64,000 nt of DNA from assembly GCA_051294905.1 (NCBI GenBank), contig CM119381.1, positions 21,576,001-21,640,000 on the forward strand, in the 5' to 3' direction. Positions 3,970-38,500 of the stretch are shown in pieces. The notes under the pieces are model-generated. The model made no database searches, was not told where the DNA came from, and saw only the letters and a list, made by a program, of their open reading frames with translations. Within the stretch, counting starts at the first letter, position 1; each line of letters begins with the position of its first letter. The DNA comes from Botryllus schlosseri. Its lineage: Eukaryota. A program made the position numbers and the translations under genes.

Positions 3970-4045
3970 ATGGCTGTAAAATATTATATAGCTTTACTCC
4001 TCTTTCTATTCGGATTACTACCAAAAGCGACTCCTCTTGATGACC
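3970..4045 (+). CDS. Gene A exon 1: signal peptide
   Basis: [25 protein letters not shown] (basic n-region, hydrophobic core), phase-1 donor GTGAGT. The paralog exon at 49199 is conserved. Confidence 0.88.
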
Positions 4046-10000: not shown

Positions 10001-13000
10001 GAAGGTACGCGGTGATACGGCAAAAATACAAAGACACTCGCAACCGATACATTTTCGTTCTAGTGAAGTGTGACGCCAACCAGTTCACGTGCTGGGACGG
10101 TACATGCATCTCAGATTCTTTGAAATGTGACGGTCAAGAAGACTGCCCAAAGGATATTGCAGACGAAGCCTCTTGTGAGTACATCTGCAGTTTGATCTCC
10201 GTATAAACAGATCACTGAAGCCTATATAGTTTGAATGCTGATATTATAGGACTAACATTAGACAAATGTGGAATCAGAGAATGGTCCGTAAAGAAGTACT
10301 TCTACTGTTTCGCTTACTTGCTCCACTTCCTCAAGTGGTTATGATGTTGGAGTACTTCTGCTTCAGAAATTTACGACATTACTTCTTCTACTTGAGTACA
10401 AACGGTGACTACTTTGCCCAGCTCGACTAAAACTCTATATCAGTGGTTCTCAACCTTTTATGTCTTCGTGGACCCCTTTTGCGCCGACAAGGACCCTGCG
10501 GACCCCACAAGTTTTCGTTCAAATTTAGCTCCATTAAAGCTAGTGACAACAACAAATTATCATCACACTATTTATGTGGAAATTGGGTAGACGGTAGCGA
10601 ATTCTCAAGCTGCATTTCTTGAAATATGTGGCAGCGTCTTGAAAATCCGCGCCTTCGATTTGATATGAACGAGCGTCGGACATTTTTTTCTACAGATATA
10701 GGTGATGGCGAATGGCATAATAACGAGCGCCGACGACCTCTTTGAGTATGATCGCAGCATATATACCACCAAAATTGAAACTCCGATTTTTTCTGAACAT
10801 ATCACGTCCATCCTAGTCATTTTCATCTAGCAGCACATTTTGAAGTTGTCCTGGGATAGTGCTGGTTATGTATATCACAGGAAAATGGATTTTCGCAAAA
10901 TATTTAAAGTCACGCTGATTGACCTTACTATTCCAACTTTTAAAAAAAATTCCTCAAATCCCAACAAAACATCTCCAATCGGCAATATGTTTGTATCAGT
11001 AGGCTATGGGCAATTTGGCAATTGAAATGAGTTTTAACAGTAAGATATTTCATCTCAGACGGCCATTATGTTGATGTGAGTCATGAAGTTGCAGCTGTAA
11101 TGAAGCAAAATTGCTTGGTAATAATCAATCATTTGAAAGTTGAGAGGTTTCGCGGACCCCCGTGAAAATGCTTCGGGGACCCCCGGTTGAGAACCACTGC
11201 TCTATCTCGAGGTTGATGATTCTTTTCAATGGAAATATGTAAACTCTAAGCCAGTTGTTCCCAACGTGAGCTATATCGCCCCCAACTGGGCGATTTTGAA
11301 CAAAGAAGGGGGCGAAAATACCAAAAAGGGTCCACTAGGATATATTTAATTTACACGGCCAACCAAAACGCACGTGCAGACAGCTTTGTCTGCATATGAC
11401 GCGAATGTTGACTAAAAAAAGGTCAACTCAACGGAAACTACTCGAACAATAACCCTTTTTCAGATAATTCAACAGCGATCAGAGTTATGTGAATATATTT
11501 CCCGTTTGTATGTCCTCTTTTCCAGACGCATAGATATGGGGGGCGAATATTTGTGTCGAGCTTGATATGGGGGCGATGATTCGAAAAAGGTTGCGAACCA
11601 CTGCTCTAAGCAAAAAGAGCGTGTATCCACACCGAAATGTTAGTACGCTAACACGAATACAGAACCTAACTCAAAATCATATCGCAGTCATAAATCCTAC
11701 GTAAACCACGCGCATACCTTACCTTATTTGGATTGAAATATTGTACTCGATTCATAACGCAGTGTAAGTTTGAATTAGGTTATGGTTCCATGTGTTATGG
11801 GAGTATATTCACATCCGTATATGGTGGTACACGGCTGGAGATTCAAACACTTTTCGCTGAGATCGTATAGTTTCTTACTCTTCACGTAGAAAGAGCTATT
11901 TTCGTCCCCATTCACATTAGACCAAATTCAAAACCCAATTCGGCGTTGTTAGTGAGTCCAAGGGGTGTATTCCGCAATGTGAAATGTTACAATATAATAA
12001 TTGGAGAGCTTCGTGGAGTTAGAGAATTTCGATAACTGGTATAAATCATTATGTACTGCCGAAATGTACTATTTATGAATACGTCGTGAACTCTCGGAGT
12101 AAAGACTTTGTTCTGTGACCAAAATTCACCCAGATATGTGGTTAAAGATGTATAAAATGCCTATCTCGGTTGATTTACCACACTAACAATGGCGAGATAT
12201 ACGAAGAGATCGATCGTAGTTCATGTTCTCTTTCCCCACTCATTCGAAGCTTGATTGAAATATTCGAACGCGTCCACGCCCCGCGCACTCGCGAGTGGGC
12301 TGCAATAATTTTGCAATATGGTTCAACTCTGGTACAAGTTCATGAGTAAATGAGCGATGTGTTCGACGTCGGATATTTAAACATGCAGATTGTAGCGTTG
12401 GCACTGCGATATAATTGTTCAAATCTCCAATCATAGGTATAATAAGTTTAGAGAAAAGATGTGCAGACCGACAAAGTTTTTTTCAAGCAAATGCCGTTAC
12501 AATAATCGCGTTTAGGTCCTATCGCGGATTCAGAGCAATGCGGCATTTCGGAAATCTCACCGGAGTACAAATGGGTAAGATATTGTGATTTTCTGCCATC
12601 ACATTCTATTATCTCCAACTGCTTTTAATAGGACAAATCCATGCAGACATGCCACAATACAAAACTATTGTACGCCTACAAAGACTTATTCAAAACAAAA
12701 ATAAAGTAGGCTAGTATCCAATTTATGTGCCTATTTCGAAACGATCCATCATGTTCAGATTGTTCACTCTCCAATCTCCGAAATAGTATAGTTGAATAGT
12801 AATGTATAGTGAACACCAGTCAGGAATCTTCGCGCTACACCGTGCGCATAAACAGCCCTTTGAACTCCGGTGCCATCACGGAAGTTGTAGACTCGAAGAC
12901 CCGTGGTAGCCAACGTATTGTGTATTGTATAGTTTAGTCTCTAGCAACATTTAACTAAGTCGGATCACGACACGATTCACTTACCTTACACACCAAATAA

Positions 13001-16000: not shown

Positions 16001-19000
16001 TGTCATTTTATACATCTAAAATTAGAGATAAATCGTTACACCTTAATAATAATATTATTATCTAGCAATCATTACGTTTTGAAAGTTCCAGTCTTCAAGT
16101 CGCTTCTGAAAGCTGGCGCTGATTACATACACATCAATCGCAGGTCACGTCGCGGAAAATACTAAATCGATATCGAAATACTTACATGTGTTCGCCATCT
16201 CTTTTATGCCCAGAGAGGATTTCGGGTTCAGCAGTCAGCACTCCCACGTTCATATTTGTCAAACTATCTTCCTCTCTCACGGAAAACCCGCCAACTATAG
16301 TTAATGGAGATAATTTACTTTGATTTATCGACTCTCATTCATTTAGCATTCGCGTATTGTTGGCGGGTATGACGCCGTGAAAGGATCCTGGCCGTGGCAG
16401 GGACTTTTTGGCATAGTATTTCGGGGAGAGGAGACCAATATTTGTGGAGCGGTATTGATTTCTGATCGATTGGTATTAACAGCGGCACATTGTATATTGA
16501 CTGGGTGAGTGTGATCTATGTTTTCAAAAATAACCTGTTTGTTACTGCAAATGATATGGATAGCAGTACCACAACTATCAATACTGTCTCGCAATTAAAT
16601 AATATTAGGAATCATCCGAAATCTTTCGAGACAGACATCCCTATTGCCGCAATAGATCTTACGCAGTGGTTCTCAACTGGGGTCCCATGGAACATCAGGG
16701 GTTTTCTCTGCCAGTCCCAGGGCTGCCCTGAAGGTTAAGACACACACTCAACTCATAAATATGATTTGTGATAATACGCCCGTCTTGGCCCTCATTGGTT
16801 GCAGGCATTTAGGTCAGATCGGTTGTGGAATTGTGACTGATATGGTGATACATCGTGACCAGTGACGTTAGCAGCGGAGTTGGAGTTCGAAACCGAATCA
16901 CCGTTTAGTTCTTCTGAAACGCCAATCCTATCTCCCACATTTATTAGCTCATTTGTAATTAGGCAGTTGGTATAATGCTGATGCGTTTCGACTGAATAAT
17001 ACGACCGGGCCTTCCAAAGTGAGCCTTCGCATTTCTGAACTGGTATCTGAAAATGAGCAGAAATCTCATTTGATTTACACTAAATATTCATTATAATGTT
17101 TTCGTTTTGTGTGGAATTATATTTTATGGATTTGTTCTTTCAAGACTCTGATAATGCACAACAATTCTCTTCAACCATTTTCGAGTGGTGCACCCTTCAA
17201 AGTTGTAGCTTCGACTCACTCTGTTCATATTGCTTAATATATGTCTACCGACTAAAAAAGGTCGTCACTTTCGTCTGGCTGCCAAATATCGGTCCATCAC
17301 GGAGGCTGATCACTGAAATTAGGTCGACAAAATCACTAGCTTCGACATCAGGATATAAACCACTGATTCCAAGTACAATGTTTCTCATGTGCACCCCATC
17401 CGGATTTTCATGCACGCGGGGGTGCACCGTGCGCGCTGGTTAAAGAGCACTGACCTATGGTAATGTATTAGATGTGTAATGCCGTGTTGGGATCAAGTCG
17501 AGCCAATCGATTTTCAAAGGCCACTCGAGTCAAGTCAAGTCACTCGTTTTTTGGGGTGTCTCGAGTCAAGTCGAGTCATGTCAAGTCAAGTCACGAGTCA
17601 TGTCACGATTCAAGTCATATTGAATTTTTGAAGTACGGGTGATGATGCAAAGTTATTACATTTTGCTGACTGGTGGAAGGACAGATTAGTTGGCCATTTA
17701 TCTTGAATGAAATAACGAATATAAAGTCAAATATGCATACAAAAAGGTGTTGTATCGCTCACACACACGTAGAACTACGCGAGTAACTGTATAGCTATAT
17801 GCTACAATCTGTTATTATCATCCAATCGGGATCGATGAGAAGCCTCGAGAAGTTGAACAAATTGATGTGGTACAATGCATTATCCATCTTCACATGCGTG
17901 AGAATATAAACGCATACACGATATTCGTTCGATTTAAATCATACAAGAAGGTTGGTTAAGGTAAGCACTGCGCAATGTAAGCACTGAGCTGTCTGAGAAA
18001 CAAGGAAACGTTACTATTAGATTAATACACTGCACACACACACACTACTGCGACAACGTAAGCTGTGATCCTTTCGTTTGCGGTCAATTTATTGTGATGT
18101 AACAATGGAGGATCATTGAAACATATAATCAGTGAATGACTGGTTACTCTCACAAGTGACCCCGGCGTATTGGGAACAATCCGAACATACAAAAGATAGG
18201 GTGATTTGATTGACACCGTTTACTTAATGACTTGAAATTGACTCGCGAATTTTGCTCCGAGTCATGAGTCAATCCACATATTTTAGGCGCCGAGTCAAGT
18301 CAAGTCAATTTTGCAAAGTGACTCGAGTCAAGTCAAGTCATACGAAAGCGTTGACTCGAATCATCCCAACACTGGTGTATTGAGGTATATTCTGTGTATC
18401 TCAGCGAAAATATTGGGTACCGCGAAGGCCTGCAGATTAGCGTAATTGTTCCACCGGTTGATAAAGGCTATGAACGACTGGTCTCTATACATTCAATAAA
18501 AACATTTACTTGTGTTTACTTTGGGATCACACGGCAGGAATCGCATGAATAGTCCGTATAGCAGGATTGTTTATGTAGCTCACGTGTTGACGCTGTTATT
18601 ATTACGGATATGCGCTCAGATCACAGTTTTGAATATACACTATACAGCGCTTGCGCTGTTCCACTCTAGTGATGTTGGTAGTAATGTTGTTGGTAATGCT
18701 AGTTGATAACGTAAATATCGCGGATGTACATAAGGGTTTATGACATAAAAACAATGTATAAACTGAATTCAAAAAATATCTTCTGCATATTCGATAAATA
18801 TGAGTTCATAACTTACTCGGGTATACAATCGAGCTTATAGACTTAGTGACTTCCAAGTCGCAATGTCAAGCGTTTTCCTCGAAAAACATTAAAAAATAAT
18901 CACCATTCAATATTCAATTAAAATGATACGGTGCGGTGTGGATGTTTCGATGATGCCCTCCTCAATCTGAGTGCCTTCAAAATGTCCCTGCTTTTCAATT

Positions 19001-22000
19001 CGACATGAGCCTGTGGAAGCACGGATATAAAATGTACAAGTACATAGAAGAAAGCGGATTCGTATAGCCGAAAAGACATCCGATATTATCCGTTCGCAGT
19101 ATCGAGCACTTTTACATCAAGTTCGGCGACCATGACACAACCGATATCGACGAGGAAGCCGAACAGAAGGTGTGGGTTCAGCGAGCTTTCGTTCATCCTA
19201 AATACGAGTGAGTCATTGAAACAACAAACCACAGATCCTTCATTACCAGCGCCGTAAAGTGATATTATCCTTTACCGCGCCTTGTAATGCAAGCCGTTAT
19301 TCAATTCACAAAATCGAACCCAGTTCACCAGAGAACTCTATATTTTTCGTAGCTGGATCGACGAAATTGGTTTTATCAACGGTTACGATATCGCGGTGCT
19401 CTACCTGAAGACTCCGGTGAATTTCACAAAATGGGTGAAGCCGATTTGCCTACCCAAGTACGAAGTTATGGACGGTGACACCATTGTTTTGACCGGATGG
19501 GGAAGAACTAGTGAGAGTACCCAAATATCGAAACAGTGTATTCAGCTATTCTGTCCGATGACGAATTTAATATGCTGAGAGACAGTCACGGATGAGCCAC
19601 GCAGTATTGAGATGTAGCTATAATCCCCTATAGCTTACATATAACATAATTCAATCAAGTTTCACTCTTGAAAGATAAAGTGAAGAAAGATAAACCTCGA
19701 CTCGCCAACAATATACTGGTTCTCGATCATGCTGAAATATCATGCTACTTCGGTTGTAAATAAGACTTTGGCTCGTTTTCGATGTAACCGCAAAGGGTAT
19801 TAAGGTTCAATACTGAAATTTCGTTCCTGACCTCCGAAGATCCGTAGCAGTCCCGAAATACTGCCTACGAATTAGAGCCTCTCGCGTGCCAAAAACGTGA
19901 ATCCAACCGACAAGTTGATACATTTATAGGCGAACGAACCGACGCCAGAAATCACCGACTATACCTGCATTTTCAGGGAACGGGGGACCAGCGAGTGCTA
20001 CCTTGCGACAGGTAGTCGCACCAGTGGTGTCTAGAGAGAGATGTAGTGAGTTGTCTAATATTCCAAACATGTCGCCGTCGATCATATGCACTGGACTACC
20101 GTTCGGCGGAGCTAGTACCTGTCAGGTAAATTTACTGTCTTTAACACATATGCCATTGCATTTGTCTTTATTGAACAATGTAGTCAAGGTCACTACATTA
20201 TGTAGCATCCTAATAATGCTGCATTGGGGAAATCACCGTCACCTTTTGAATATTTGCATATACTAAGTGCATGCCTATGTAAGTATAAGCCTATGGCAGT
20301 GGTTCTTAAACTTTTTAGACCGTGAACCAAAACGGAGTTTAATTGACATCTCGCGACCCAAGTCTCACACGTCAAAATGAATGCATTTCTAATGTTAGGA
20401 TGCTACCTTTGACGGCTATGCATGGAATGGAGATAAAGGTGTTGCTGTACGCAACGCAGTTCCGCAAAGTTCATTGAGAGGGTTAGTTACACGGTTCCAA
20501 GACACAGGTCAATCCTACTTTTTAGTTTTGACTTGAGTCAATTTGAATTCACCACCGAGTCAAGTCCGAGTCGAAGTCAAGGGTCGAGGTCCAGGGTCGA
20601 GTTCAAGTCATATATTAGTGTTGAGACTCTCGAGTCTGCTCCGAGTGATTGTGTTCACCATTCAGTTTATAGTTCAAGACATGTTAATTTGACTATTTTA
20701 CAACTCTGCTTGGGTGATATCGAATTCCTCTTACTAATAATGTATAGTCATTTTCCTCACTTCAAACAGTTTCTGGCCCTATTTTACAAATACCAGTGGT
20801 TCCCAACGTTTTTGTTGTCACGGACCCCGATAGACAGATTAGTAATTCTGCGAAGCCCAGCCTAAATTTTGCCTGAAACTCAATTAAAATTATATTGGCT
20901 ATTTTAGGAATTATGCTACTCAACTACTGTACTGTGGCAAAATGTTGTTGCTGTGGTCGTTAAAGAAAGACAAACAGAACGAACGAACGTAGAAACAACA
21001 GTTGAATACACCATGAGCATGAAGTTGAATAAACAATTGACAGAATACTAAAATAAAGAAAGTATAGAAAAAGCGTGGAAGTATATATGAATGAAGACAA
21101 GAAAGGCTGTCGACTGAAACACGCTACATCTGCACAGCAGGAGAAGAGGGCCATAGGTTTTTATCGGGAATGGCGCCTAGCACTGTTAGTATTTGGTCCC
21201 TTTTGCACTGCCGAGTATTACCCGCGCATGTTACAGATTTCCAGAGAAAGAAAACCACTGACAGACAAATCTTTATCACGGCATCATACCATTCCGTGTA
21301 TAGCACAAAGGTTCAAGCCATACTGTCGTAAACTCTTTTCTACTGTCCCGCTTATTGGCAAGGGTACCAAATACCTTGGATCCCTAAACTTCCACAGAAT
21401 ATCGCGAGTAGCGCGAAGAATTTTTTTTGTTGCACGAAATTCAGCTAATATTGCATATATACTAAACACTCGCTCTGGTGCGGTCGCGACCCATACTTTA
21501 AATACCCCTTTCCTATGGTAATCAAAGTAATATTATCCAATACAAGATATATGGGTTGTTATGGTAATCGCCTGAACGGACTGTATTATAAAGGGCGATT
21601 CTGGAGGGCCAGTGGCAGCGTTGCAGAATGGAACCTGGGTAGTCGCGGGAATAACATCGTTCGGGTCGTTTTGCGGTGAATCAACCATTCCAGGATCTTA
21701 CACAAATGTGCATTATCTACTTCCATTCATTGTTGACGGTAAGCTGTCTTCGCATGCCGTGCATGCTATTTCTATTACATACATATATTGCATAATCTTC
21801 AAACTTGATTAACCCTTTGGAAGGAAACGCATGATTTTGATACGGGTTGCCTGCATAACCGATTTCTCCATATTGACACACCGTGGACGACGGTTGGTAA
21901 GATTTTTGAAAAGCTGAGATTTCTCCATCTTGAAAATTTTAGTTTCACCCAAAAAAGTTAGGGAATTTGAAAAAGTGATTATCACAGTGATCCTATATCG

Positions 22001-25000
22001 ACAATCAACACAGTAGCCTATATATATACTAGGACCAATGATCCCTCTAATTCTTCACGAGTCTGCGCGCACTAACCAACTCACTGCGGGGTCCATTAGA
22101 CCACAGTGCGTAACGAATAAAATAAAGGTCATCACTTCGGCTTTTTGTGCGCATCTTAGATTTACTGTGCGTAGAAACCGTGTCAGCCCTGCACAATTGC
22201 ACACGCGCGCAGCTTAGAGGGAGCATTGACTAGGACATATATATGTTCTTAATCGGGGTTCCGGTAGCCAGTCTCGGGGATTAATTCGGTGTCAGCACAC
22301 GCACTCACCTCAAACATAAGATGCGTTTCAAATCCAGCTTAATTTTCTAAGTCATTTAAAACTTTGTATTTTTCCTCTGTTAATATATTAATGGAAAAGG
22401 CTTTAAACTCTTACATTTTTAAATTCAGAATAAAATAATATTTATTATATTTATAATCGTATTGGTGATTCCGTATGCTTCTTACTATAGGATATATGAG
22501 TACGCTCCTCGAGTCACTACATGATCCATTACATTTCAGTGATGTCGAACGGCTTGACAGAAGTCAATGCAGGTGAGCATTTTCCCTTTTTTATATCTGT
22601 TTTTCACGATCGCTGCGTCTATTTGATGAATTTTTTACGCAGTGAGCCGTGTGATAAGAGACAAAACAAGTGGGGTGATTTCATCTCCAAACTACGGTGT
22701 CGGGAAATACCCAGGGGGCGTTCATTTGCTTTGGTATATCTTGGCAGAACCGCAGAAGGTATATGTTAAAATTAGCGATATTCGGACAGTGACAACGGGA
22801 TTTTAACCTATTCAACCCGGATGAATGCTTTGGATAAATATGATAGCAGAGGTGGCAAATCAGAATGCCCATATGCAGCTATATTCATCAGAATGTACAT
22901 GCAATAAAATACCGTGATAACCCCGAGATGTTTCGAATCACGAATGTCTATTCGGACCGAGACCGTTCCACAGACACGGGTAACCACGACAAACGTTTCC
23001 ACCAAACAGTACAAACGACGTTTCTCTCAAGGCACATCGCGTTTGTATGAAACGATAACGTACCCGAGAATGAGGATCCCTTCCTCCTCGCATGCCCAAA
23101 ATATGATTGGCCACGAGCATATTTGATTGATTTCTGCTTGAACTTGAAAGTTGAGTTTACCACATATAACCTTCTCGTGCGGCCAGAACTTCTATCGCCT
23201 GTCGTTGAGTTCTTCCTGGCCAGCAACATGTTGATTTAAGCATTTTTTTTAGATAAACGATTTGAGACATGTAATACGATTTTCTTTTTGTCGTGGCCCA
23301 CCAGACCGATAAAATGATAACCGACACAATGTCCCATCTTCACAATTAATAATAATATTAATAGTAATAACCACTACTCATGCCTCGTAAACTCACGGAA
23401 GCAGTGAACTGCGAGCGAATGTGAAGATCTCGAGCAATCGTGCTGTGCAGTGAGTCGCTACACTTTACCATCGACTCCGACTCATCCCTCTTATCGTAAA
23501 GAATGTGTATTTCCACCCGTGTACCACCCCTGATATACGGGTGTGAATATGCACCCAGCATGCCACGTGGAACCAAAATCTATACCTCAGACTTATACCG
23601 CGGTATAAATCGAACACAACATTTTAATCCAAATTATGCTTGCACGTGAACGCAGGAACGCATTCACGTGTCGTAGGCACTCAGGATTCACGACCGCGAT
23701 ATAATTCTGAGGAGGCTCTGTTTTCCTGTGCCACCATTTTTTGCCCTTTGAGTGTAAATGCACACTCTCACTATTTTCTTCACATAATTCCGACTCCTAC
23801 AGTCATACAAATTAGCTTCGAAAATCATATGCCACAGTGACGGGTAATGATTTTCATGTACCCTTTATGCATTTGAAAACATATTGATCATGATAACACA
23901 TTGTTTCATTGTGACGTGACTTCACTGTGCAGTAAACATCGAAGCAGTCATTACAAAATATCCTTCCTTGTTTTATTCGTTATAATTTTTATTAACCTAG
24001 ATAATCCGCGAATACTCATTCCGACATAATTTATGTCTCATCCAGTATAATAAAAAGGCGGATTAAAAACAATCCAAGTGTACTTCTAGTTTCTGAAGTA
24101 TACTTCAAGTACATTTTGCCTGCTCGCATTACTTCATCTAGTGGTTATGATTTTTTACACTACAACTTCTTCTATTATGATAGTATACTCGACACTCTTC
24201 AGTGTTTAAGATTATTATCAGAAATATCAAGACCGAAACAGCACTTCGCCAGCCCACCCCCCAAAAGAACCGTTAGTCTTGGGCCCCCATAGGGTGATAA
24301 ACCCAACTTCTGGGCGGATTTGCCTCCAGACCCCCAATCTTCCGCTACCTTATTACCTGTGTTTGAACCAGCGATATTTGATGTACTGTTTGGTGAGTCA
24401 GATTGTGACACCAAGCCGCACAAAAGCGGATATTTTCCATAATTTAGGGTTGAATCGGGCAATATGATCGGGAATTGCATATATAATCATACATATATAA
24501 ATTTTTATCCCCTCTCTGCTCACGTAATCAGATATACCGGTAGAGCTGAGTGATGTGTCTTGGAAAATGAGGGCCGGTAATATAATTAAACACATTCGGG
24601 CGGAACCGAACCGTTGGTATAATGACTTCCTTAGATGATGGTATTTCGTAACCTCTTGTCTGCTATGTCAAAAGATATTGAAATCGATCAAACGCAGTAA
24701 ACTAAAAGACGCACACGACATCAAATTGTGATTTCTGCAGTGGCAAATAATTTTTCTTTGCGGGATGGCATTGGTCTTGTGGAGTTTAGATTGCCAGGAC
24801 AATAACATTTCAGCACAAGTCATTCAGGTGCCTATATGGACAATTAAACATATATGTATATATATCGAAGTTTTCGGTCAGCATAAGGGCAGTCGCGCAT
24901 AGCGCGAAATAAATTTGAAAAATTTGCATAGATTTTTAAAACAGAATCTATAAATTATGTTAATTCACGAAATAATTTTGGCCCCCTTCGAGCTCGGCTC

Positions 25001-28000
25001 CGTAATCGGGGGGTTGGGGTGCGGCAGTTACGGTGCTGAATAATATTACTGATATCAGTGATAATATTTTACTGCTTCTATGGTTGGTACTTGGTACTGC
25101 TTCTATTCTACTGTTTTCAATTTTCCGAGATATTTGAAAGCGATAATTGGAGTCGCAGTCGGAGTCAGGTGCATGTTAATAATATTCGCCCCCAGCCATA
25201 TACAATAAAATACTCAAATTGTTTTGGAAATCTCATTTCGTGATTTTATACATCCAGAACATTTTCATCGAATTTCGTATTATTCGTAGATTGAATATTG
25301 CACGCCAAGGTCGGTTGTATAGCCTATACTTGCAGTTGATTCAAATCAAAACATCGCAATAGTCAAGAGCAAAATAACCAATTCCTCTCGATAAATCCTA
25401 TTTCGTGATTTTATACAACCAGCTTCTTTTGAAGAAATTTCTTATTAATAACAGCAGGTTTAATATTGCCTGCCATATTCGGTTTTATACTTACAGCTGA
25501 TTCAAATCAGATTTAACGAGGAATTCAGAATCGAGCAAACTGTATACAACTCTCCTTGCGCAGGGGACTATCTACTAATTTATGACGGAAGCTCGACTCT
25601 CTCCCGTAAGGTACCGTATCTGACGAATGAATATAAAACGGTGTCCACCTTGATGTGTTTTTGATACTCAGTACGGAGACAAACGCATATGTGGTTACCG
25701 GTCACCGCTTGATTTGGAAAGCCAGAGCAATGCAGTGATTATAGAATTCCATTCCGATAATAGTTTCGAGGATGCGGGATTTTCACTATCATGGGAGGCT
25801 GTAGGTAATGGTTTCTATATCATTGAAATAAGATATGCCTTGTGTTATCCAATGTAATAATTTTGCATCATTCACATTACAGACGCATGCGCATCGAATG
25901 AACTCCGTTGTTGGAACCAAACTTGTTTGCCCGAATCAATGAAATGCGATGGCGTTCAGAGTTGTCCAAGTAACAATGATGAATTGGAATGTGGTTAGTA
26001 TCTTGTTAGCATCGTCAATGAAGTGATCCGTGTTAATATCAACCGTATCCAAATATAGCTTTAGGTACTCCGGGATCAGTGGAGTGCGGGAAATCGGAAG
26101 TTGCTCCTGAGTTCCCGTTCGTAAGTCATTCGTTTTAAGTTGACATCTGCCGCCGTTTTGACGGTCGGTTCCATATGATAGTGCACTCTACCTCCGTCCC
26201 ATAATATGTGCCTGGGCTAAGCCGATCTCGTTATGAATGATAATTAACAATAGAATATTCGTTACCGGTTATATGATTATAAGAAGAACTAATCAAGTAT
26301 GGCGGAGGTCTTCTGGATGTCTACTGCAGCTCTGTTCTTCGCCGACGCAAAATATAATGCCAATCACACATAGTAGCCTATATATATAATAGGTGGAAAA
26401 TAATTGATTGTTAACAACCACGAAGTCAGGCCTCTCCACGGTAACTATCTTTGAGTCGGACCGTGGTGCACCAGACCCTTAAGGGAGATAAGCGCCACTA
26501 CAACTTTTAATCATATTAATAATAATAATATTAATCTTTGAGTTCGCAGAAGCATGGGATAAGAACATTTTACATGTCCTATTCTTATGCAATGTACTTT
26601 GTGCCCTAGACCCCCCTTATTGTCGGGGGACATAATACGGTGGAAGGTTCGTGGCCGTGGCAAGTTGGACTGTATCGTAAAGACGGAGACTCTTATAGAT
26701 TCACCTGTGGAGGGACTTTGATGTCCGAGTATTGGGTTTTAACGGCAGCCCACTGCATAATCACGTAAGAATCTGTACGTCGGACTCTTTTCATCCTTAA
26801 TTACAGATTACTTGGAGTAAACTGACATGAAGCCTGCGTATCTTATGTGCACATGTAATGACATTTAGCAACTTATATTTATACACTCTCATTTCCACTT
26901 TATTCCCCGTTTGTTCTTCTCCCGCCAATATATCGATGCGAATCATCGGGTCACATAATCACGCTTTTTTGGTACAGTCCAGATATGCAGGTCGCCATTG
27001 GTGACTACAACAAAAGTGCTAATAGTACTTCAAGACACGAAAAGAGAATAGACGTAACAGCAGCTTTGCAGCACCCAAGCTACGGAGGGTGAGGACTAAT
27101 GATGTTGATAATATTATGATGTGAAGACCGATTTAACTTTTAACATTAATAATAGTTTGCAATATGTATATTTATAATATTCTCGCCAATTTGACCAATG
27201 ATGATAATTAAATCTTATCAAGAAACTGGTCCAATAGACTGCCTTTTAGCAATGAAGAAGTATAGTGTCTGTATGTGTTACTAAATTGAAGTGCGGAGAT
27301 TGGACGGATCGATGAATTCTATCCCCATCCATTTAAAAAATGTGAGTGCAAATTAAAATAACAGCGCAATTATTTTCTGTTGTGCACATAAAGATCCGTA
27401 AACGACGACATAGGATTTCTGAGACTAAAAGAACCAGTTGACTTCACTTCAAAATGGTATAAACCGGTGTGTTTACCGCCGAAAGGGGAGATGAAACCCC
27501 CGGTGGGTGCAACATGCATCGTCACTGGCTGGGGTGTAACTGGTAAGTGTTGAATAGATTATCTAATGTAAAGTTGATAACAACTTACAAGAAATGCGAC
27601 AACCCTCGTACACACGCTAGTTAGCCGAACATTCGATTGCTATCATGTGACGGCTGTCTATCAATGAAGAAGCTCACATCCTCAAATAAGTCCGTTCTCC
27701 AACTTCACGATCGTCCATTGATCGCCATGAAGTCTAAACAAAATCGAATTATTCAACGATGCCTATCGAAATATCGCTACTATGGGCGTAGGGCCCTATA
27801 TCGAGGGTTTGGGCCAACCAGCGACGGTTTTATCGCTGCCGATCTTTTTTGCACCGCACTTGTCCTCAACGTATGTTGACCAAACCTCCATCTCTTTATG
27901 TGTCCTGGTGCGGATAGGGTCAACCCAGAAATGCCTGTATATGATATAGTCTCGCACCCGCAGCATATTGCCATCCTTAGACTATAGCTTCCAAAAGGTC

Positions 28001-31000
28001 TCTAGCGGTGTTAAGCGATACCAAGAATGAACCGTTCTTTCCCAATTGCGAATACGGTTAGAATTATTGCTGTGAATTATGTGCATTAAAAAACTATCGG
28101 TGCCGCAGTTATGGCCCTTCCTCCCACTTCCATGTCCGATGAGATCCGCAAGTTAGAGCTTTTCACAGAAACCAATGTCAGACAAATCTTATCATGATAT
28201 CAAACAATTTTTTCAATACAAAAGTCCGTGCATTTTATGATCAAGTCATATTGTCGTAACCAGTTTTCTGCGTTCCCCGCTTATTGGTGATACTACCCGC
28301 GGGAAATTTGGCAAATATTACATGTATATTGAAAGATCGTAGTCGCGACCCTAATTCACACCCTTCGCGACCCATACATTAAGAACTTCCTTCTCTACAT
28401 ATGGGACCGAGCTATATGAGAGCGATGAAGCTGTTAGTCCATGCACGTGATAGTTTGGCGAGGGGTAACGGCGGTTCCGTATTGCCACAGGGAGCTCCAG
28501 GGATTTGAATCCGCCAGATATTTTGCAACAAATTCAAGTAAAGGTCTTGAACGACAGTGCATGCCAGATCGGATTCCAAATTTATGTCGGAGGTGACACC
28601 GCGCTAATTTGCTTGGGTAAAATCGACCGAGACGTGGGTGCCTGTTTCGTAAGTAACCCATAACTACAATATGTTGTCCAATAGCAGTTGGTTATGAATA
28701 TGAAATGTCCAGGGTGACTCTGGCGGACCACTGATATGCCAACACGGTGGAACGTGGGTACAATATGGAGTCGCGTCGTTTATTCTTCCGCCATGCGGAT
28801 TCCGTTCATTCTACCAAAGAGTGTCTCTTCATATTGATATGATAGAAGACGGTACGCATTTTACAGATATTCTTTAGCTTGGTATATATAACGAAGTATA
28901 GCAGGGATTGTACAAAACTCTAACAGATTCTAGTTCGCGTGAACACGATACGTTAATCTTTTGAGAATGTTAGCCATGAACACGAACATTAACATGAACG
29001 TATGAGATTGATGTCTACGCAACTTTAGCTAACGTCATATCATGATCTTTATGCAATTTGTTGGTAAAGTTTTATTAGAATCAGGGGTTAGTATAATGCT
29101 CACAATGTCCCATGATTCGCACCTATTGTTGGGCTGTCCAGAGGATCTCCGGAACCAGAACTAAATTGCACCGATGGATCCATAAATGGCATCTGCGATT
29201 GCGTCTTGATGTCTCATTCTGCTACTGCGCGATATGATAGGCTTGTGATCTCAATGTCATATCGATGTAGTCGTGATAGAAGCGAGTCAATATGTTTTTC
29301 ACAACCGCAATTTCATGTTAGTTCAGGCCAAATTCTCGAGATTCACCATATTGTTTTGCGATTTCTTCGGAATATCTGTTTTTGCTGCATGCCACGTTGA
29401 TATCGCGGGTAATATAATTCAAATTTAAGGATATTTGATCGAGATGTTAAGATTATTGTGAAATTCTGCTCTATTTTGCAAAGTTTTGCTAGTGTAGGTA
29501 GAAGCTTTCGAAGTTTTGCGAACGTGAACCTCTGAACTATTAAATTCGAACACGGATCTTAGCCGAACGTTCTACTGCAGGCTGTTCATAAACGCACAAC
29601 TCATATTCTATAGATGCATAATGGCTGAAGGTTTGAAACATAGTATTGGCTTCAAAACAACACGATCGTCGCATGACAAAGATCCACCACGCGACCGACT
29701 ATTCTATCAGTAAATGGTGAAGCGTTCAAACGTGTTAATGGTTCACTTCGACATAAGCATAAAAAGTGTACCCTTACGTGTTTGGAAGTGGAATATGTTG
29801 AATATAAATCAACATAATATTAAAATTATTCTCAAATTACGGCTGATGCTGACGCAGGTCGCATGTGTTTCTCCGCCCTGATATGCGCTTACTGCAAAAT
29901 AATATTTGATATATGGAAACTTACTCTTACCCGTAACTAGAATCCTAATTCGTTGTGTTCTACATCAGCATCGAACTGATCAACCAAATCCGTAATTCCC
30001 AAATCATAGCACCGAATATTCGAGAAGTTGACAGTTTATCCTCTTTTCATCAATTCAATTCAATTCAATTTATTGCTAATATTTTCGTCATTTCAATACA
30101 CCACAAGACTGCGATACAATGGGAGATAGGAAGGTGTCGAAACGACTTGGAGTAGTCTTCGATATCAGACACTCACCTGGCCTGGGCGATATAAAAAAAG
30201 GACGTATGCACACTAGGGTTGTTCAAAAAAACTTTTTCTTCCAAATCTCACTCGCCTAATGACTAAATCGTCACGTTGTCTAAGACAACGATCCACACCA
30301 AATTTGACTCAATTCCAACCAGTAGAGGCCGTGCAATCTTGAATTGAAATTTTTAGTTTATTATTGAAAATTAAAAAAAAAATTCAAATTTTTCTGTCAA
30401 ACCCCATGAAATTGTTGAGCCGTCTTCAAAGACGATGCAAAACAAATTTGAGTCAATTCCGACTTGTAGAAGCGGAGTTATTCGAGTTTTTCGTTGATAA
30501 TTCTCGGATTATCCTTGGGCTGCTAGATTACGATATGATAAGTATAGTAAATGCTAGATTGCGAAACATCGGTTTCAAACGTTATGATGAGCAATATATA
30601 TTGTGATGAAATATTTCATATCGGCGAAGGGCGACAATCCGGTGTGAACGGAATCACGTCAACCCGCTACCTAAATTATAGTCACCGATACTATCGTGAA
30701 ATCATAATGGTTACTCCGTATCCACTGAGCGCGAAGCGCGACGAAATGTCTGAGCTTTACTCAACTTTCATGAAAACTAAATGTTGATACTCCTTGAAAA
30801 CAGCACCAAAATTCCTCGGGCTATTTTCCTGATTGGAGGATTAAACTACTTCTACTTGACAAACTGAAAATAGCGACAAGTAAGTAAGTAGATCACAAAA
30901 TATTACGAAGTAGAAGTAGAAGTAGCGAAAATCAGATCTAACTGAGTAAGTACCAGAAGTAGAGGAAAACTACTTGAGTACTTTGAAAAAGTAGAAGTAC

Positions 31001-32539
31001 TTCGTTACTAACCACCTCTGCATATCGAACACTATTGTCAGCGTCACGCATGCTAAAAATACTCCCTCCATGAAAAGCCCAGAGGAAGAGAGAGCCGAAC
31101 TCTAGAAAGATGACAGCAAAAAAAGACCAGAAAAGAGGACGCAAGTAAAGCGTAAAGACATTACGAAAATTACTGTGCGGGCGCAAATGACCCAAGTGTT
31201 TATAAGCGCCAATTGTGTTATTAAAACAAACGAATTCCTACCTAAGTCACGGTTCGTTGGCGATGACGTCGACAATAATTAAAATTCCATGGAGGTTTTG
31301 GATATCATACGGTCGGCAAGATATTGGTATATTTTGCCTAATTTATTAAAATTCATCAAACCTTTTCAACTTTTCTAATCTCTACTATGTCGGTACCACA
31401 GAGGAACAGTTTTAATTATTTCAATACGATTCCAAACTGTTTACTATTATGATGTCATATTCAGTTATTATCCAATACGCGACTCGTAATCCATGTTTGA
31501 TGACGCATCAACTTCGCCAACATCCACTGTGGCACTTCAATCGGACATTAGGACATTTTGTAACGTATGATGTCTTATTTCTATACCACATCATTAGTTT
31601 TTTTACACCCTCCTGTAGTTAAGATGGTGTAATATATATTACTCTCTCTTTCCACTCTCTAAATGCCTATTTTTTGATTTACAGTGATACTATACGAAAA
31701 ATTCTTACAAACATTATCCTTCATGTTTACAGTGATCAACGACTTACAAAGTAAGTATTTCAAAATACACCACTCAGACCTCTTTTGTGTTGCGACATTG
31801 GTTCTAATTGTCTTATTCCATAAAATGAAGTATGTTCTGAGCTGGATATTATCGACGACAAAGACGAAGGTGTGATTGTGCCTCCAATATTCGCTGGAGG
31901 ATATTTAGACTCTACTCAGTGCAGCTGGCTTATACGCGGAGCACCGAACACCGTAAGTGTCGCCCTATCATAGGTTGACAAAATTTCGCCGTGGTATTGA
32001 TGAACTTCCAATACCAATAATTGTACTGTAATGTAAACTAGAGTTCAATATCTTCGAAATCCAATTAACCGCAAACATCCATAACGCCTTGGTTAGGGTT
32101 GCATTTAAAACAAAAATAAATTCAAAACAAACATATTTACAGGACGTTTTTTATTGTTTTATTTTGTCATGACGTCACGAATATTTATTGGGTTGGCATT
32201 GACAATTGAAAATATAGGGTAAATATAGGGCCCCTTCGGCGTAAAGGACTTCCGACCACTGTCATCATAAGCAGACCAAAAATATCTTTAACCAGGACTA
32301 CATCGCTATGCAGCATTTTTGCTGTCGGCGGTCATCATCATCGAAAGACCCATTCCGTGCCAGTGATCTATCTTCGCCCATGTGTTGTGTTGTGTTGTGT
32401 GATCTATCCCTGCCTATGTGTTGTGTTGTTTTGTGTGATATATGTTTGCCTATGTGTTGTGTTGTGTGATCTATGTTTGCCTATGTGTTGTGTTGTGTTG
32501 TGTGAACTATCTTTGCCTATGTTGTTGTTCTTGTTGTAG

Positions 32540-32571
<32 letters not shown>

Positions 32572-35500
32572 GGTGGTGCTGTTGTTAACCGCTTATCACC
32601 TGTTGGTATTTTGCACCACGGTCAATAATGGCGTAAAAAATGAAAAGCAGTCAATGATGGCGTAGCCTACGTATTGGATAGAAGACATAATTTTAAACAT
32701 AGCATTTCAGCAAAACGAAAAAATATCAGGGCCTGAAAAAGGGAGGGGCAGTATATAACTAATTCTATATCCGAATGCACCTGATATGTGACCGGTTATT
32801 ACCAGTTGTGATGTCGCAATTGAATGTTTTCAAGATCGTATGCAGTGGTGCTTTATTTAACTATATCGTGGATTTGCAGGTGATTACAATACGATTCGAG
32901 TTATTTGACTTGGAAGATTGCTCCTTCGATGTGTACGATTTTGTGGACATTTACGATGGCAACTCGACATCAGCCAGACAGGTACGACTTCTGGTTTTAT
33001 AGTATAGTCCTGCGCCCCTCTATGTGCACAGTATAGGCCTACATGTTTGATGATATGGTATCGGATATTATCCCCAGGGTTGTAACCAAGTCACAAGGCT
33101 CCGAGTCACAAGTCAATTTCACTTTTATAATTTTGACTCGAGTCAAGTCGAGTCATTTTCAACTCACTACCGAGTCAAGTCCGAGACCAAGTCATCGATC
33201 AGAGGGTCGAGTCCGAGTCATGGTATTATGACTCGAGTCGAGTCCAAGTCAATGCGTTGACTGCTCAGTTCCCAGCTAAAATCTTGTTACACTCACTTTT
33301 TATAACTCTGTTTGGTGATTTTGAATGGTTCGCATTTATAATATACCAATTTTCCTCATTTTTAGCAGGTTCTGATCGCATTCTCACGTACTAGTACCCA
33401 TAAACGAAATCCCAATAGGGTGGTTACTTCACTATTGTTCGAAATTACGATAAAATATCGGTCTTGGCCGTCTGCGTCTCGGGTCATATGACTTGGTTCG
33501 AGTCATGCGCAATGACTCGAGTCCAAGTCGAGTCAATACACAGACTGACTCGAGTCGAGTCGAGTCATTTCCAAATTTTGAGAAAATGACTCGAGTCAAG
33601 TCGAGTCATCAGAAAATCGTGACTCGAGTCCGACTCGATTCGAGTCATGACTCGAGTCATTACAACCCAGATTATCCCAAACTATAGACAACTCTATGAC
33701 ATGGGCAAAGTGTTGATTCCTATTCAGCAATCCAAATAATTGACCTCTGAAGCTTCATGTCTTATACGGGGTTCGAACGCGAGTAGCACATTTTCTAGCT
33801 TACGCAAGGATATTATACCTGCAAATGCCCTCAATATTGATTTACGGTAAGCTTTTTATTGCAACGTAATTGAGGTTTACGACACGTTCCTGTGTGGGAG
33901 CGCGGAGAGCATCAGGGGATTTGAGTCCAGCTCAAATGAAGTTCTTATCACCTTTCTCTCGGACGGCTCTACTAATGGTCAGGGATTCAAAATCAATTGG
34001 AATATTGTAGGTGAGTTCATGGTTCCCAAGCGGGTCAGCTATGTATTATTTCAACTTCAAGATTTTTCTTCGCGAGATTTACTGAACAGTCAGCTGTAGA
34101 TTCTCTCAACGCCATCCGCAAATACATATAATTTAACGAACGAAGTTCAGATCTCCAGTTAACTACGCGCAGTTCGCTGCAATTTATGAAACAAGGTGTT
34201 TGTTTGTTTTATTCACACATATACAGTGGCGCAAGCCTATATGGTCATTTGCGCCACGACATTAATTTCAGTAATTTCAGTCCTTTGCCTCTGTAATGTT
34301 TCGGACGACTTCCATTCTCGCTCTCTTCCATCATCGGTCACGCTCGTTTTTCATGCGCCCATATCTTGCACTTTGCTGCCGACTTTTGGCTCGGCTCACC
34401 TTCACTCTGCTCTGGGCTTTGGAAACACTGCTACCGCAGTGAGGTCAGCCCAGAGAAACCTCCGACACATAGTAGTTAGTCCGAACCGGGATTCGAACCA
34501 CCGCCGTTGGTGTCGTGACGCTGGCGCTTAACCAACTGCGCCACTCGCTTTCCCGAAACAAGGTGTATTCACGTTGATAGTGACACTTTGGATGCTTCGG
34601 TGTATACTATGTACAATCATCAAATCTTGTTGACTAAAAGACCACCACGCGTGATTGTATGTAGTAGAGCCCAATGATATGTAAATCTGTATAGTTAAAG
34701 TAACCTCACTAGCAGAATACCTTTTTTGAATAACATCTATTTTTCGCGCAAAAAACATTCCACGTTGATCTCGAAACTACATCTAATAAATTTGATAGCG
34801 CTTACCGGCGATTGGATGATGAAGTCTACCATCTCGTCCCAATCTACCTTGCAATAGTAATTACTTCAGTAATGTAGATCTTCGTACCCTTCAAAAAATT
34901 TTGCGATTTTTAATTTTTTTTTTATTTTACCATGCGTTTTTTTGTAATTAGGTATAAATCGCGGGAATCACAACGACTTGTGTATCACCGATGACTGCCT
35001 CACAAAAACGATACAAATCTACCAATAAACTAATCCACTGGAAAAGAAATGGGTGATAGCAAAATGCAAGTATATAATCTGAGTTGTAATCAGAGGTGGT
35101 TACCTAAAATACTATCTATTCCAGGCCCCAGGTTTTGGCTAAAAGAATGAAACTCTGAAGTTGTAGAAGTATTCTAAAATCAAAACCCTACTGGACTACT
35201 TCCAGCAGTAAAAGCACTTTGTTACTTACCCTCTCTGCTTTTAATAACAGTGATTTTGAAGTCTACAAAATCGACAGAACTTCAGGGTTGGATCGTAAGG
35301 CTTTGGTAGCTATCAAAATCGACACAGTGCGCATATCAAATAGACACAGATTGATCCAGTAAACATATTGGGTTTCGGTAGAATTCATTGCGCAAATTGA
35401 TTGCGAGCAACCCTAATTCCACGTCATTTCAGAGGACTGCACGCCCGATCAATTCCGCTGCTGGAGCGGCGAATCTTGCCTCGACGGCGCCCTACAATGC

Positions 35501-38500
35501 GACGGAAAGTCGGACTGCGCCGATGAGAGCGACGAAAAAGAATGCGGTGAGTAGCCCTGGCTAATGGTACCGTGACATGTTCGTGATACATTTTGCAATG
35601 CGCATTTTAGTGATTGTCGACGGGGAGTGCGGAAAACAAGACATCGCCCCCGAATTTTTGTGGGTATGTATTCGAGCGAACTGAATCTCTCATCCGCAAG
35701 TCGTGAGATTGTCTTTAAACCGACTCTCTTATTTGTAGCACGCAAGAATCGTCGGCGGACACTTGGCGAAAAACGGTTCGTGGCCGTTCATTGCGCAAAT
35801 AGAAAACGCTTTTCTTGAAGACTTCTTGTGCGCCGGTACCATCGTCAACGATCGATGGGTTCTCACGACCGCTGCTTGCGTGGACTCGCACATTGCGTAA
35901 GTATGTGTATGTTGTATGCTACTCAAGTAGAAGCTGAAGTAACATCGTACATTTTTAATCTATATAAGTGGAAATAGAAACTGAAATCGCTGGAACATAT
36001 TCAAGTAAGTGGTTTTTAAAGTATATTTGGTCGCCAGTGGCTATAACTTTCCAAATCGCAAGATGCATTTTCGCGCCTAACGCAAAAGGACTAATGAATA
36101 ACACTACATACAAATAGGAACAGTCGTCCAAAGTCTATTCAGTTATACAAAGTCCACATATACGAGATATAAACAGAAAAATATCTACATGTAGACTGAT
36201 GGATTTACAGACGCAGATTATGACAAGACCATATTGGAGATAGTTACGCAACCTCAATTTAAACTTGGGTTCAAGTTCAGAAAATCACTCTCAATAACTC
36301 TACATTCGAGGATGGTATTACGTAAAACCTCACCGTGCGAAAAATGCATGGAATTAAAATACGAGTTAGGAAATGTTGCAATTGTTACGGAGGCATCGAA
36401 TTGATATGACAGATGACTGATGCGTAACAGACTTATTGCTTGACGTGGTACAACATAATCTGATCAAATGTAGTAATTTGTTATTAAGGCATAAATGATC
36501 GTTCTCTTAACGAAAACCACGCAAATAAATAATAAAGGGATGCGATTTGGAAATGTGGCGATCGAGTTACGAATCAGTACCATTCTTGGCAATTTTCAGG
36601 GTTGATCTCCTCGTGACAGTGGGTACCGTTTCTTTCCTTCCGTCGGACGTTATGAAGTACGACGTCGAGTTAATCAGTCGACCCCGAGAGTAAGTGACAG
36701 CATATATTCGATCAGCATCTCGACAAGTGACGTGAGCTTATGGGGCAACCGTTTCAGGTCAATTTTAACGCATCCGGAAGGAGCTGGTCTTCTGAAACTT
36801 TCAAAAAACATCGCGTTTTCTTCTTTCGTGCAACCGGCATGCATAGCCATCGCTGGCCTGACAAATGAACCTGAACCGGGTGAATTCTGCGTTGTACTGG
36901 GATGGGGCTCCAGACGTGAGTGATTCGTGAAATGAAATTATTCGATATAGCTGTAGACCAGTGGTTCCCAAAGTGGGCGCCAGCGCCCCCCTGGGGGCGT
37001 TCGCGTGCGTCAAGGGGGCGCTGGCCATGAAATGGGCGATTGGGGGTCGCTGGCTAGAAAATTGGGCGGTAGGGGGGCGCTGAGAGCAAATGCGGGCGGT
37101 GTAGAATTAAAAGGCAACTGCTGCATATAGTGTTGAAACGATTAATTATTAAAGCAGCTAGATTCGCAGTAAAAATGCATAATAGATTCAGTAAGGGCAA
37201 TTTAGGGTTCTCCGTCTATTTATTCAGCTGTACCGGAAAAGTCCATTGTTGAACTACGAAGTATAATTGAACAATTATTGCTCCCTGCAAGATGTGATGG
37301 CTTTTTAAGAGAAACTGTCTTGCGTGATTTTATTATCTGTTTCAAACGATCGTGGATTTTCCACAGCGCTGTCACCGTGACCTTCGACACGGTGTTATGG
37401 TTGCGTGAAACGACATCACTCCTAATTGACTGTCGTATTTCTCAAATTTAAGGTTAGAATATATCCGTTCTTAGTAATGATGAACATGGCACTGTCCGTA
37501 TTTGGTGACAAGTCAGCAGGGTTGTAACCAAGTCACAAAGCACCGAGTCACAAGTCAATCTCAGTTCTATGGTTTTGACTCGAGTCAAGTCGAGTCATTT
37601 TCAATTCACCACCGAGTCAAGTCCGAGTCCAAGTCAGCGAAAAGAGAGTCGAGCCCGAGTCACGGTATTATGACTCGAGTCGAGTCCAAGTCATTGTGTT
37701 GACTGATCAGTTTCCTGTTAATTTCTTGTTAAACCTATCTTTTATAACTCTTTTTGGTGATATCGACTGGTTCGCATTAATAATGTACTAATTTTCATCG
37801 CTTTTAGCAGTTTCTGGTCGCATTTTCAAGTACCAGTACCAATAAACGAAATCCCAATATTGTGTTTACTATTCTTCGAAATTACAATGAAATGTTGGTC
37901 TTGGTCGTCTTCGTCTCGAGTCATATGACTTGGCTCGAGTCATGCGCAACGACTCGAGTACAAGTCGAGTCAATACACATATTGACTCGAGTCGAGTCGA
38001 GTCATTTCCGTATTTTGGGAAAATGACTCAAGTCGAGTCATCAGAAAATCGTGACTCGAGTCGGACTCGAGTCGAGTCATGACTCGAGTCATTACAACCA
38101 GCTGCAAGTCAGTGATAATTCACCGGAATTTTGCGACACATCAACTGTTTCAATTCACAAGCTTGCTTTGAGTTACCGGTCCAGCTCGAACACCTGATTT
38201 TGAAGGAGAAACATGAGTCAATCAACTCACAAAATTACACGAGGATGGTGATTTGGTTCCAGGATATATTCCAATTAGAAATTCCTCACCGGATAATCAA
38301 TCCATTCTGTGTAGTTTCCGGGCACAAAATGTTAGAGCAGCTGATTACATTGTAGTTATAGGGTTACCATACGTCCTCTTTTAACGGGATTTGTCCTCAT
38401 TATTGAGTTTTTTAAAAGTTTCCTTGGATGACGCCTAAATGTCCTCTTTTTTGAGAATTTGTACTCTTTTTTTAATATTATGGTTAAATGTACGTGGAAA

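Follow-up and report, generated by a model that had tools for sequence, protein, structure and literature searches.

A three-protease gene of the sea squirt Botryllus schlosseri with a conserved leucine activation site before its middle domain

Protease cascades such as those of clotting, complement and insect immunity normally consist of separate gene products, their order being set by the match between each enzyme and the activation site of the next zymogen. The question raised by a locus of the sea squirt Botryllus schlosseri (contig CM119381.1, nt 21,576,001 to 21,640,000; the window, 64,000 nt) is whether the same logic may sit on one tethered polypeptide, in the order Arg site, chymotrypsin-type enzyme, Pro-Leu site and second enzyme of another specificity. 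The stretch at nt 16347-28851 of the window, from the first exon of one serine protease domain (SP1) through the last exon of the next (SP2), forms the central part of a transcribed ascidian gene specifying a single polypeptide with three S1A (chymotrypsin-fold) modules. The layout has been kept across a large and fast-evolving tandem family of sea squirts, which are the vertebrates' closest invertebrate relatives, and the Arg/Leu/Arg order of the cut sites of SP1, SP2 and SP3 is found across at least 12 paralogous copies. An earlier note on this DNA had proposed that an outside trypsin-like enzyme activates SP1, which then activates SP2 at Leu. That SP1 activates SP2, on the same or a neighbouring molecule, is the reading tentatively preferred here.

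Cut sites, catalytic residues and pockets

Residues were numbered from alignments to solved chains and from a 26-domain alignment. The first exon of SP1 (nt 16347-16504) opens with the cut site HSR/IVGG and contains His57 (TAAHC), while nt 19353-19510 specify Asp102 (YDIAV) and Cys122 (PICLP). The exon ending at nt 20125 carries GGASTCQ, giving S189, T190, C191 and Q192, and the exon at nt 21594-21738 carries Ser195 (GDSGGP) and, by gapless alignment to the TMPRSS13 and tryptase chains, G216 and G226. The triad His57/Asp102/Ser195 and Gly193 are intact. The combination S189/G216/G226 is the chymotrypsin-type pocket, and a bulky residue at 216 gives elastase-type specificity. The S1 pocket of SP1 (S189, T190, Q192, G216, G226; gapless alignment and MAFFT table) thus has the chymotrypsin-type signature, which fits a predicted specificity of that type.

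In SP2, the first exon (nt 26610-26764) opens with TPL/IVGG, the Leu being encoded by CTT at nt 26616-26618, and again contains TAAHC; Asp102 (DIGFL) and Cys122 (PVCLP) lie in nt 27394-27542. The exon ending at nt 28648 reads RDVGACF (G189, A190, C191, F192), and the exon at nt 28713-28851 carries GDSGGP together with I216 and S226, as placed by both HMMER and MAFFT alignments. The triad and Gly193 are again intact. The resulting pocket, G189/I216/S226, differs from the Val216/Thr226 of classical elastase and from the G216/T226 of paralogs, the assignment of position 226 being alignment-dependent because of indels in the 217-224 loop. SP3 has an Arg cut site (HAR/IVGG) but has lost the triad and the oxyanion Gly193 (H57A, D102G, G193S, S195R), while Ile16, Asp194 and Cys122 (PACIA, in nt 36689-36915) are retained. 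Judged by these residues, SP1 and SP2 are catalytically complete, and SP3 is a catalytically dead homolog that has kept its activation switch. All three domains share a Cys followed by 14 residues and then I-V-G-G, as well as Asp194 and Cys122, so that the propeptide Cys stands exactly 15 residues before the cut, matching the placement of Cys1 in chymotrypsinogen.

The cut sites and pockets that the earlier note gave for SP1 (HSR/IVGG, S189/G216/G226) and SP2 (TPL/IVGG, G189/I216) are borne out by the exons and alignments, Ser226 being added here, and the linker Cys residues it listed (EQCG, VECG, GECG) are present at the 15-residue spacing, as is Cys122 in PICLP, PVCLP and PACIA. Its description of SP2 as elastase-type is only partly upheld: the pocket residues are right, and the class label rests on Ile216, which was seen in this copy only (the other copies with a readable exon have Gly216).

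Transcription and gene structure

RNA contig sets from three different studies (runs X1, X9 and X10) hold approximately 28% of the sampled words of nt 25400-29000, near the exon share of that stretch. They contain the GT..AG joints 25610/25672, 25804/25883, 25993/26059, 26120/26610, 26764/26978, 27088/27394, 27542/28491 and 28648/28713, so that every SP2 junction of the gene model is matched. The joint 26120/26610, which creates PEFPF/TPL/IVGG, occurs in all three runs, and since a stop codon lies directly upstream of nt 26610 in that frame, the TPL reading does not depend on how the gene was modelled. A start of the SP2 propeptide exon at nt 26065 was replaced by 26059 on the RNA evidence. 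Beyond nt 28851, a contig of X10 continues with 18 letters found at nt 31733-31750, and a loose RNA end before nt 25495 matches the end of the exon at nt 22643-22758 in 29 of 30 bases. Between nt 25400 and 29000, about 20 single-base differences separate the contigs from the window (26711 A>G, 26726 C>G and 28587 T>A among them), and one X1 contig shows five in the SP2 last exon. Allelic variation, or reads that stem from a close paralog, may account for them.

The window is intron-rich, animal-type DNA with a GC content of approximately 41%. The gene (+ strand, nt 3970-41902) comprises 41 exons, all introns being GT-AG, with a frame open over approximately 1611 codons. A pseudogene is out, given the open 41-exon frame and the spliced RNA. 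Pfam searches were run on single exons and on the collinear Styela clava protein P0146, which stood in for the spliced product of the window. In each of the three protease domains the first and the last exon matched the Trypsin family (PF00089), and LDLa matches fell in the expected exons. The features of the gene are as follows.

3970-4045, + strand: exon 1, start codon and signal peptide (open reading frame with GT donor; 76% identical to the exon of paralog B at 49199-49273; collinear with Styela N-termini)
6370-6491, 6806-6898, 6973-7093, 7578-7711, 7838-7942, 8008-8134, 8728-8855, 8952-9053, 9872-10004, + strand: CUB1, CUB2 and CUB3, nine exons (GT-AG chain, open frame; align to the CUBs of Styela P0146, which has five Pfam CUB matches)
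10064-10174, + strand: LDLa1 (Pfam PF00057, E 4.9e-9)
12516-12574, + strand: SP1 propeptide exon (EQCG), Cys 15 residues before the cut
16347-16504, 19100-19207, 19353-19510, 19977-20125, 21594-21738, + strand: SP1, five exons (Pfam Trypsin in first and last; gapless alignment to solved chains; residue table)
22540-22572, + strand: probable 33-nt micro-exon between SP1 and CUB4 (predicted; top splice score in the intron, fills a gap against the Styela proteins)
22643-22758, 25497-25610, 25672-25804, + strand: CUB4, three exons (RNA joint 25610/25672; the 29/30 loose-end match falls in the first)
25883-25993, + strand: LDLa2 (Pfam PF00057, E 1.6e-7; RNA joints 25804/25883 and 25993/26059)
26059-26120, + strand: SP2 propeptide exon (VECG; RNA joints 25993/26059 and 26120/26610 in runs X1, X9 and X10)
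26610-26764, 26978-27088, 27394-27542, 28491-28648, 28713-28851, + strand: SP2, five exons (Pfam Trypsin; four internal joints in RNA contigs; alignments)
31733-31750, + strand: 18-nt micro-exon (VINDLQ) between SP2 and CUB5 (X10 RNA contig; flanks ttacag and gtaagt)
31831-31952, 32880-32981, 33875-34010, + strand: CUB5, three exons
35433-35546, + strand: LDLa3
35611-35663, + strand: SP3 propeptide exon (GECG)
35739-35896, 36689-36915, 39510-39658, 39721-39862, + strand: SP3, dead protease domain, four exons (Pfam Trypsin in first and last; residue table; Styela alignment); least secure boundary: 36689, where the second exon begins
40940-41074, 41471-41539, + strand: Ser/Thr-rich stalk (phase-1 GT-AG chain)
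41802-41902, + strand: last exon, hydrophobic GPI-like tail and stop (phase-1 GT-AG chain; hydropathy; GPI, glycosylphosphatidylinositol)

The product accordingly reads signal peptide, CUB1-3-LDLa1-propeptide-SP1, CUB4-LDLa2-propeptide-SP2, CUB5-LDLa3-propeptide-SP3, stalk and hydrophobic C-terminal tail, each protease being preceded by a CUB-LDLa unit and a 15-residue propeptide of the chymotrypsinogen type. The model is collinear over its whole length with three proteins of Styela clava (P0146, P0148 and P0009), at 45%, 40% and 44% identity, the value for P0146 being 45%; Pfam finds three Trypsin, five CUB and three LDLa domains in P0146. An end of the gene at the stop after SP3 (nt 39876) was dropped in favour of a donor at nt 39862 followed by the stalk and tail exons, by analogy with the Styela proteins, which have a similar stalk and tail at their C-termini. 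Outside the protease cores, the sole stretch of at least 19 strongly hydrophobic residues is at the extreme C-terminus, and the tail before the stop fits, by eye and by hydropathy, the pattern of a GPI-attachment signal, in which small omega-site residues and a short spacer precede a hydrophobic tail with no cytoplasmic part. The protein belongs to the secretory pathway and is probably GPI-tethered. The splice sites of the 33-nt micro-exon after SP1 are as strong as those of the 18-nt one after SP2; no comparable candidate was seen after SP3.

The leucine site in the array and in other sea squirts

The gene lies within a tandem array on contig C11 (approximately 21.11-21.65 Mb), an array of about 600 kb from which 200 kb of DNA were fetched, and which has at least ten SP1-type and 12 SP2-type first exons. 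The residue before the cut (P1) is Leu in all 12 SP2-type exons, which begin (T/V)(P/S)L/I(V/I)GG and use the Leu codons CTC (five times), CTA (four), CTG (two) and CTT (one); the preceding residue (P2) is Pro in 11 of them. Of the SP1- and SP3-type first exons, 13 were recovered, and all have Arg at P1. For the upstream copy and paralog B, which are the nearest paralogs, pockets were read from the SP1 exons. All SP1 pockets read are non-acidic: this gene and the upstream copy have S189/G216/G226, paralog B has N189, and distal copies have S189/A216/T226. Among the Botryllus copies, the SP2 pockets have G or N at position 189 and S or T at position 226; Asp194 is present wherever a last exon was read, and His57 in 11 of the 12.

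In Styela clava, the SP1 and SP3 sites are Arg in all three proteins and the middle site is NPL-VIGG in P0146, YPL-LVGG in P0148 and SPV-IIGG in P0009, that is, Leu, Leu and Val. Position 189 of the Styela SP1 domains is S or G. The SP2 pockets vary: P0009 has a trypsin-type pocket (D189/G216/G226) behind its Val site, and P0148 has Arg at 193, the position of the oxyanion-hole glycine (G193R). SP3 is dead in this gene, P0146 and P0009 but intact and trypsin-type in P0148 (D189, full triad, TPR/INGG), so loss of SP3 activity is lineage-specific within the family. More distant relatives (Clavelina P0147 and P0152, Phallusia P0165 and the JGI protein P0017) have Arg or Lys at every site. In a tree of 26 domains, the SP1, SP2 and SP3 domains of this gene and of the three Styela proteins form three position-specific clades, making them orthologous domain by domain; SP1 and SP2 are sister clades (support 98/95), and a hydrophobic P1 has a single origin (support 100/99). 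By these comparisons the Leu site is beyond chance: it is strongly non-random, old and strictly conserved.

Several other members of the array were seen. Paralog B starts within the window at nt 49199 with the signal-peptide exon that is 76% identical, and its SP1 first exon (HSR/IIGG) is at nt 63169-63327; beyond the window its SP1 has N189 in place of S189, and TPL/IVGG recurs in its SP2 first exon (L036, L040, L002). One SP2-type copy (L007, G000:C11:21402809-21402958) has LTAARC, that is H57R, yet keeps TPL/IVGG, and by these residues is a dead SP2 still bearing the Leu switch. Two distal paralogs (L018-L023 and L028-L031; C11 21.150-21.207 and 21.251-21.282 Mb) have the order SP1-SP2-SP3-SP2'-SP3' with sites R-L-R-L-R, both SP3-type domains carrying H57R; each five-domain run is probably a single gene, the gap between the last SP3 exon and the CUB exon that follows being only about 180 nt. 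Units with CUB3-LDLa-SP1 only (L013-L016, C11 21.100-21.139 Mb) occupy the far end of the array, one with GDRGGP (Ser195 to Arg) and the next with an intact GDSGGP. Such units are possible trans activators of Leu sites. SP1 exons 84-88% identical to those of this gene are also present on a second contig (L035 and L039, G000:C7:23342522-23343099), and represent either a dispersed paralog or an unplaced array copy.

A candidate activation scheme and its relation to known proteases

The scheme that these features suggest has four steps. An outside trypsin-like protease would cut the Arg sites of SP1 and SP3. Active SP1, with its chymotrypsin-type pocket, would then cut the Pro-Leu/Ile site of SP2, in cis or on a membrane neighbour. 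The freed Ile16 N-terminus would pair with Asp194 and turn on SP2, whose narrow, uncharged pocket (G189/I216/S226) would give it a substrate preference unlike that of SP1, and disulfides of the Cys1-Cys122 type would hold each cleaved chain to the C-terminal anchor. The outside starter and the tethering follow established S1A rules, and the cut of SP2 by SP1 is the hypothetical step. A starter is needed because no domain joins an Asp189 pocket to a live triad, and on this point the reasoning of the earlier note was sound. SP1 is a fitting activator of SP2 because P2 Pro with P1 Leu is a chymotrypsin/elastase substrate motif; the standard substrates of these enzymes, AAPF, AAPL and AAPV, have P2 Pro. 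The tethering is likewise well founded, as every propeptide Cys and every Cys122 is present, and the same Cys-based reasoning has been applied to polyserase-3 (PMC1435904). The earlier claim that the cleaved chains stay disulfide-held to an anchor stands as to the Cys residues; the anchor is the GPI-like tail at the C-terminus, not one at the N-terminus. The 'timed' character given to the two steps is speculation.

Several observations weigh against activation of SP2 by SP1. A non-tryptic SP1 and a hydrophobic SP2 site came together in one change on the tree, so that their match represents conservation rather than repeated co-evolution and does not count as replicated evidence. SP1 and SP2 form sister clades, both without Asp189, and SP2 or a neighbour's SP2 could also accept Leu. 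The free-standing CUB3-LDLa-SP1 units and the five-domain genes, with two Leu sites for one SP1, favour activation that is at least partly in trans. The Phallusia relative has an S189/G216/G226 domain and Arg sites only, so that such a pocket alone is no sign of a Leu-site partner. In the raw RNA run X17, no reads fell on the stretch at approximately 6% sampling, a result that says nothing about tissue or level. Finally, the scheme is drawn from sequence, and the specificities are predicted ones. A complex prediction for SP1 (residues 461-700) and the SP2 zymogen (876-1128) of Styela P0146 gave a score of 0.22 (mark 0.34) and carries no weight either way.

A possibility to be taken seriously, if on the unlikely side, is trans cleavage of the Leu site by some other enzyme of the chymotrypsin or elastase type (the SP1 of a paralog in the array, a free-standing CUB3-LDLa-SP1 unit or an unrelated protease), which would make the polypeptide one substrate and one link of a broader network rather than a self-contained cascade. 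The array supplies candidates in its ten or more SP1-type domains, set beside 12 SP2-type domains, in the single-protease units at C11 21.100-21.139 Mb and in the five-domain genes with their two Leu sites per SP1, and any of the SP1-type pockets could serve, all being non-acidic. On the other hand, SP1 and SP2 have shared one polypeptide in unchanged order since before the split from Styela, and the common anchor puts a molecule's own SP1 at the highest local concentration. Self-activation of SP2, by itself or by a neighbouring SP2 and with no role for SP1, has in its favour the uncharged pocket (G189/A190/I216/S226), which may accept Leu, the compatibility of the Botryllus SP2 pockets in general (G/N189, S/T226) with an aliphatic P1, and the fact that autoactivation is common among S1A zymogens. 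It is nevertheless quite improbable, since P1 stays the same whereas the pocket of SP2 differs widely between copies: the trypsin-type SP2 of Styela P0009 cannot cut its own Val site, that of P0148 has Arg193, and Ile216 should, by inference from elastase, narrow the pocket of this copy to residues smaller than Leu. As a general rule, an activator other than SP2 itself is thus favoured, the site being hydrophobic throughout while the SP2 pockets change.

It might also be supposed that the Leu site is unused, SP2 being a single-chain enzyme or a non-catalytic binding module in which an Arg-to-Leu change (CGN to CTN) merely disabled tryptic activation. The two codons are one base apart, and SP3 shows that dead domains are tolerated in the family. 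This is very unlikely, as every SP2 copy keeps Ile16-(Val/Ile)-Gly-Gly, with Asp194 wherever the last exon was read and His57 everywhere except in L007, and P2 Pro with P1 Leu or Val has been kept over approximately 55% sequence divergence, which would be unexpected of an unused site. Activation of SP2 by SP1 is retained as the tentatively preferred reading. A more far-reaching form of it appears doubtful: a hard-wired, membrane-tethered cascade on one polypeptide with an Arg-to-Leu hand-off set by domain order, in which P0148-like members with a live trypsin-type SP3 would be self-priming (SP3 to SP1 to SP2), this gene would be an externally triggered two-step version left after the death of SP3, and the R-L-R-L-R paralogs would be extended versions. 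If SP1 does activate SP2, the gene would offer a compact natural model for the origin of a cascade by domain duplication and a one-base site change (CGN to CTN), for the retention of dead domains and for comparing cis with trans activation on membranes. Otherwise, the gene still provides a new, well-documented polyserine protease architecture with a strictly conserved non-tryptic site.

The Styela relatives are labelled 'transmembrane protease serine 9-like' by NCBI, and polyserase-1/TMPRSS9 is indeed similar in having three tandem, membrane-bound S1A domains with LDLa, the first two active and the third inactive, and in its propeptide and Cys122-type Cys residues (PMC1435904). TMPRSS9, however, is anchored at its N-terminus as a type II protein, has a SEA domain in vertebrates (Pfam PF01390), lacks CUB domains and has Arg at all sites, whereas the ascidian protein has a signal peptide, five CUBs, an LDLa before each protease, a C-terminal stalk with GPI-like tail and the middle Leu site. 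A type II N-terminal anchor is absent, the N-terminus being a short signal peptide and the only long hydrophobic segment being C-terminal, and no Pfam match to SEA was found in Styela P0146. The protease domains of the two are not positional orthologs, and orthology to TMPRSS9 was rejected because neither the anchor type nor the domains match.

Ovochymases likewise have a signal peptide and several S1A domains interspersed with CUBs, and the Xenopus ovochymase precursor (Lindsay et al., 1999) reportedly mixes trypsin-like and chymotrypsin-like domains. We know of no report of a non-tryptic activation site between ovochymase domains. In those proteins a protease domain comes first, there is no LDLa and a stalk or GPI-like tail has not been described, whereas the ascidian protein begins with three CUBs and has an LDLa before every protease. 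The Halocynthia protein HrOvochymase is arranged as SP-CUB2-SP-CUB3-SP with a third domain lacking the catalytic triad (PMC9265791), and orthology to it was also rejected, as the architecture differs. A precedent for a P1 Leu step is found in insect immunity, where ModSP/HP14, an LDLa-bearing S1A protease, is chymoelastase-like (P1 Leu) and activates the next zymogen (PMC10732536). There too the cascade is ordered by an Arg-specific versus a Leu-specific switch, but the components are separate, soluble gene products with other accessory domains (Sushi, clip) and no orthology to the ascidian protein. In C1r/C1s and the MASP enzymes, CUB-bearing S1A zymogens are held in a complex in which one activates the next; these differ in being separate polypeptides (CUB-EGF-CUB-CCP-CCP-SP) with Arg at all sites. 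A literature search with polyserase and tunicate terms did not find a paper on this ascidian polyserine protease family. On the sequence comparisons it is a distinct one, already represented in public databases.

Several introns also contain copies of a repeated element, at nt 17464-17640, 18231-18445, 20437-20690, 33037-33690 and 37484-38080, with similar translations (SRVESSHF / VKSSQV), which is probably an interspersed repeat of the Botryllus genome.

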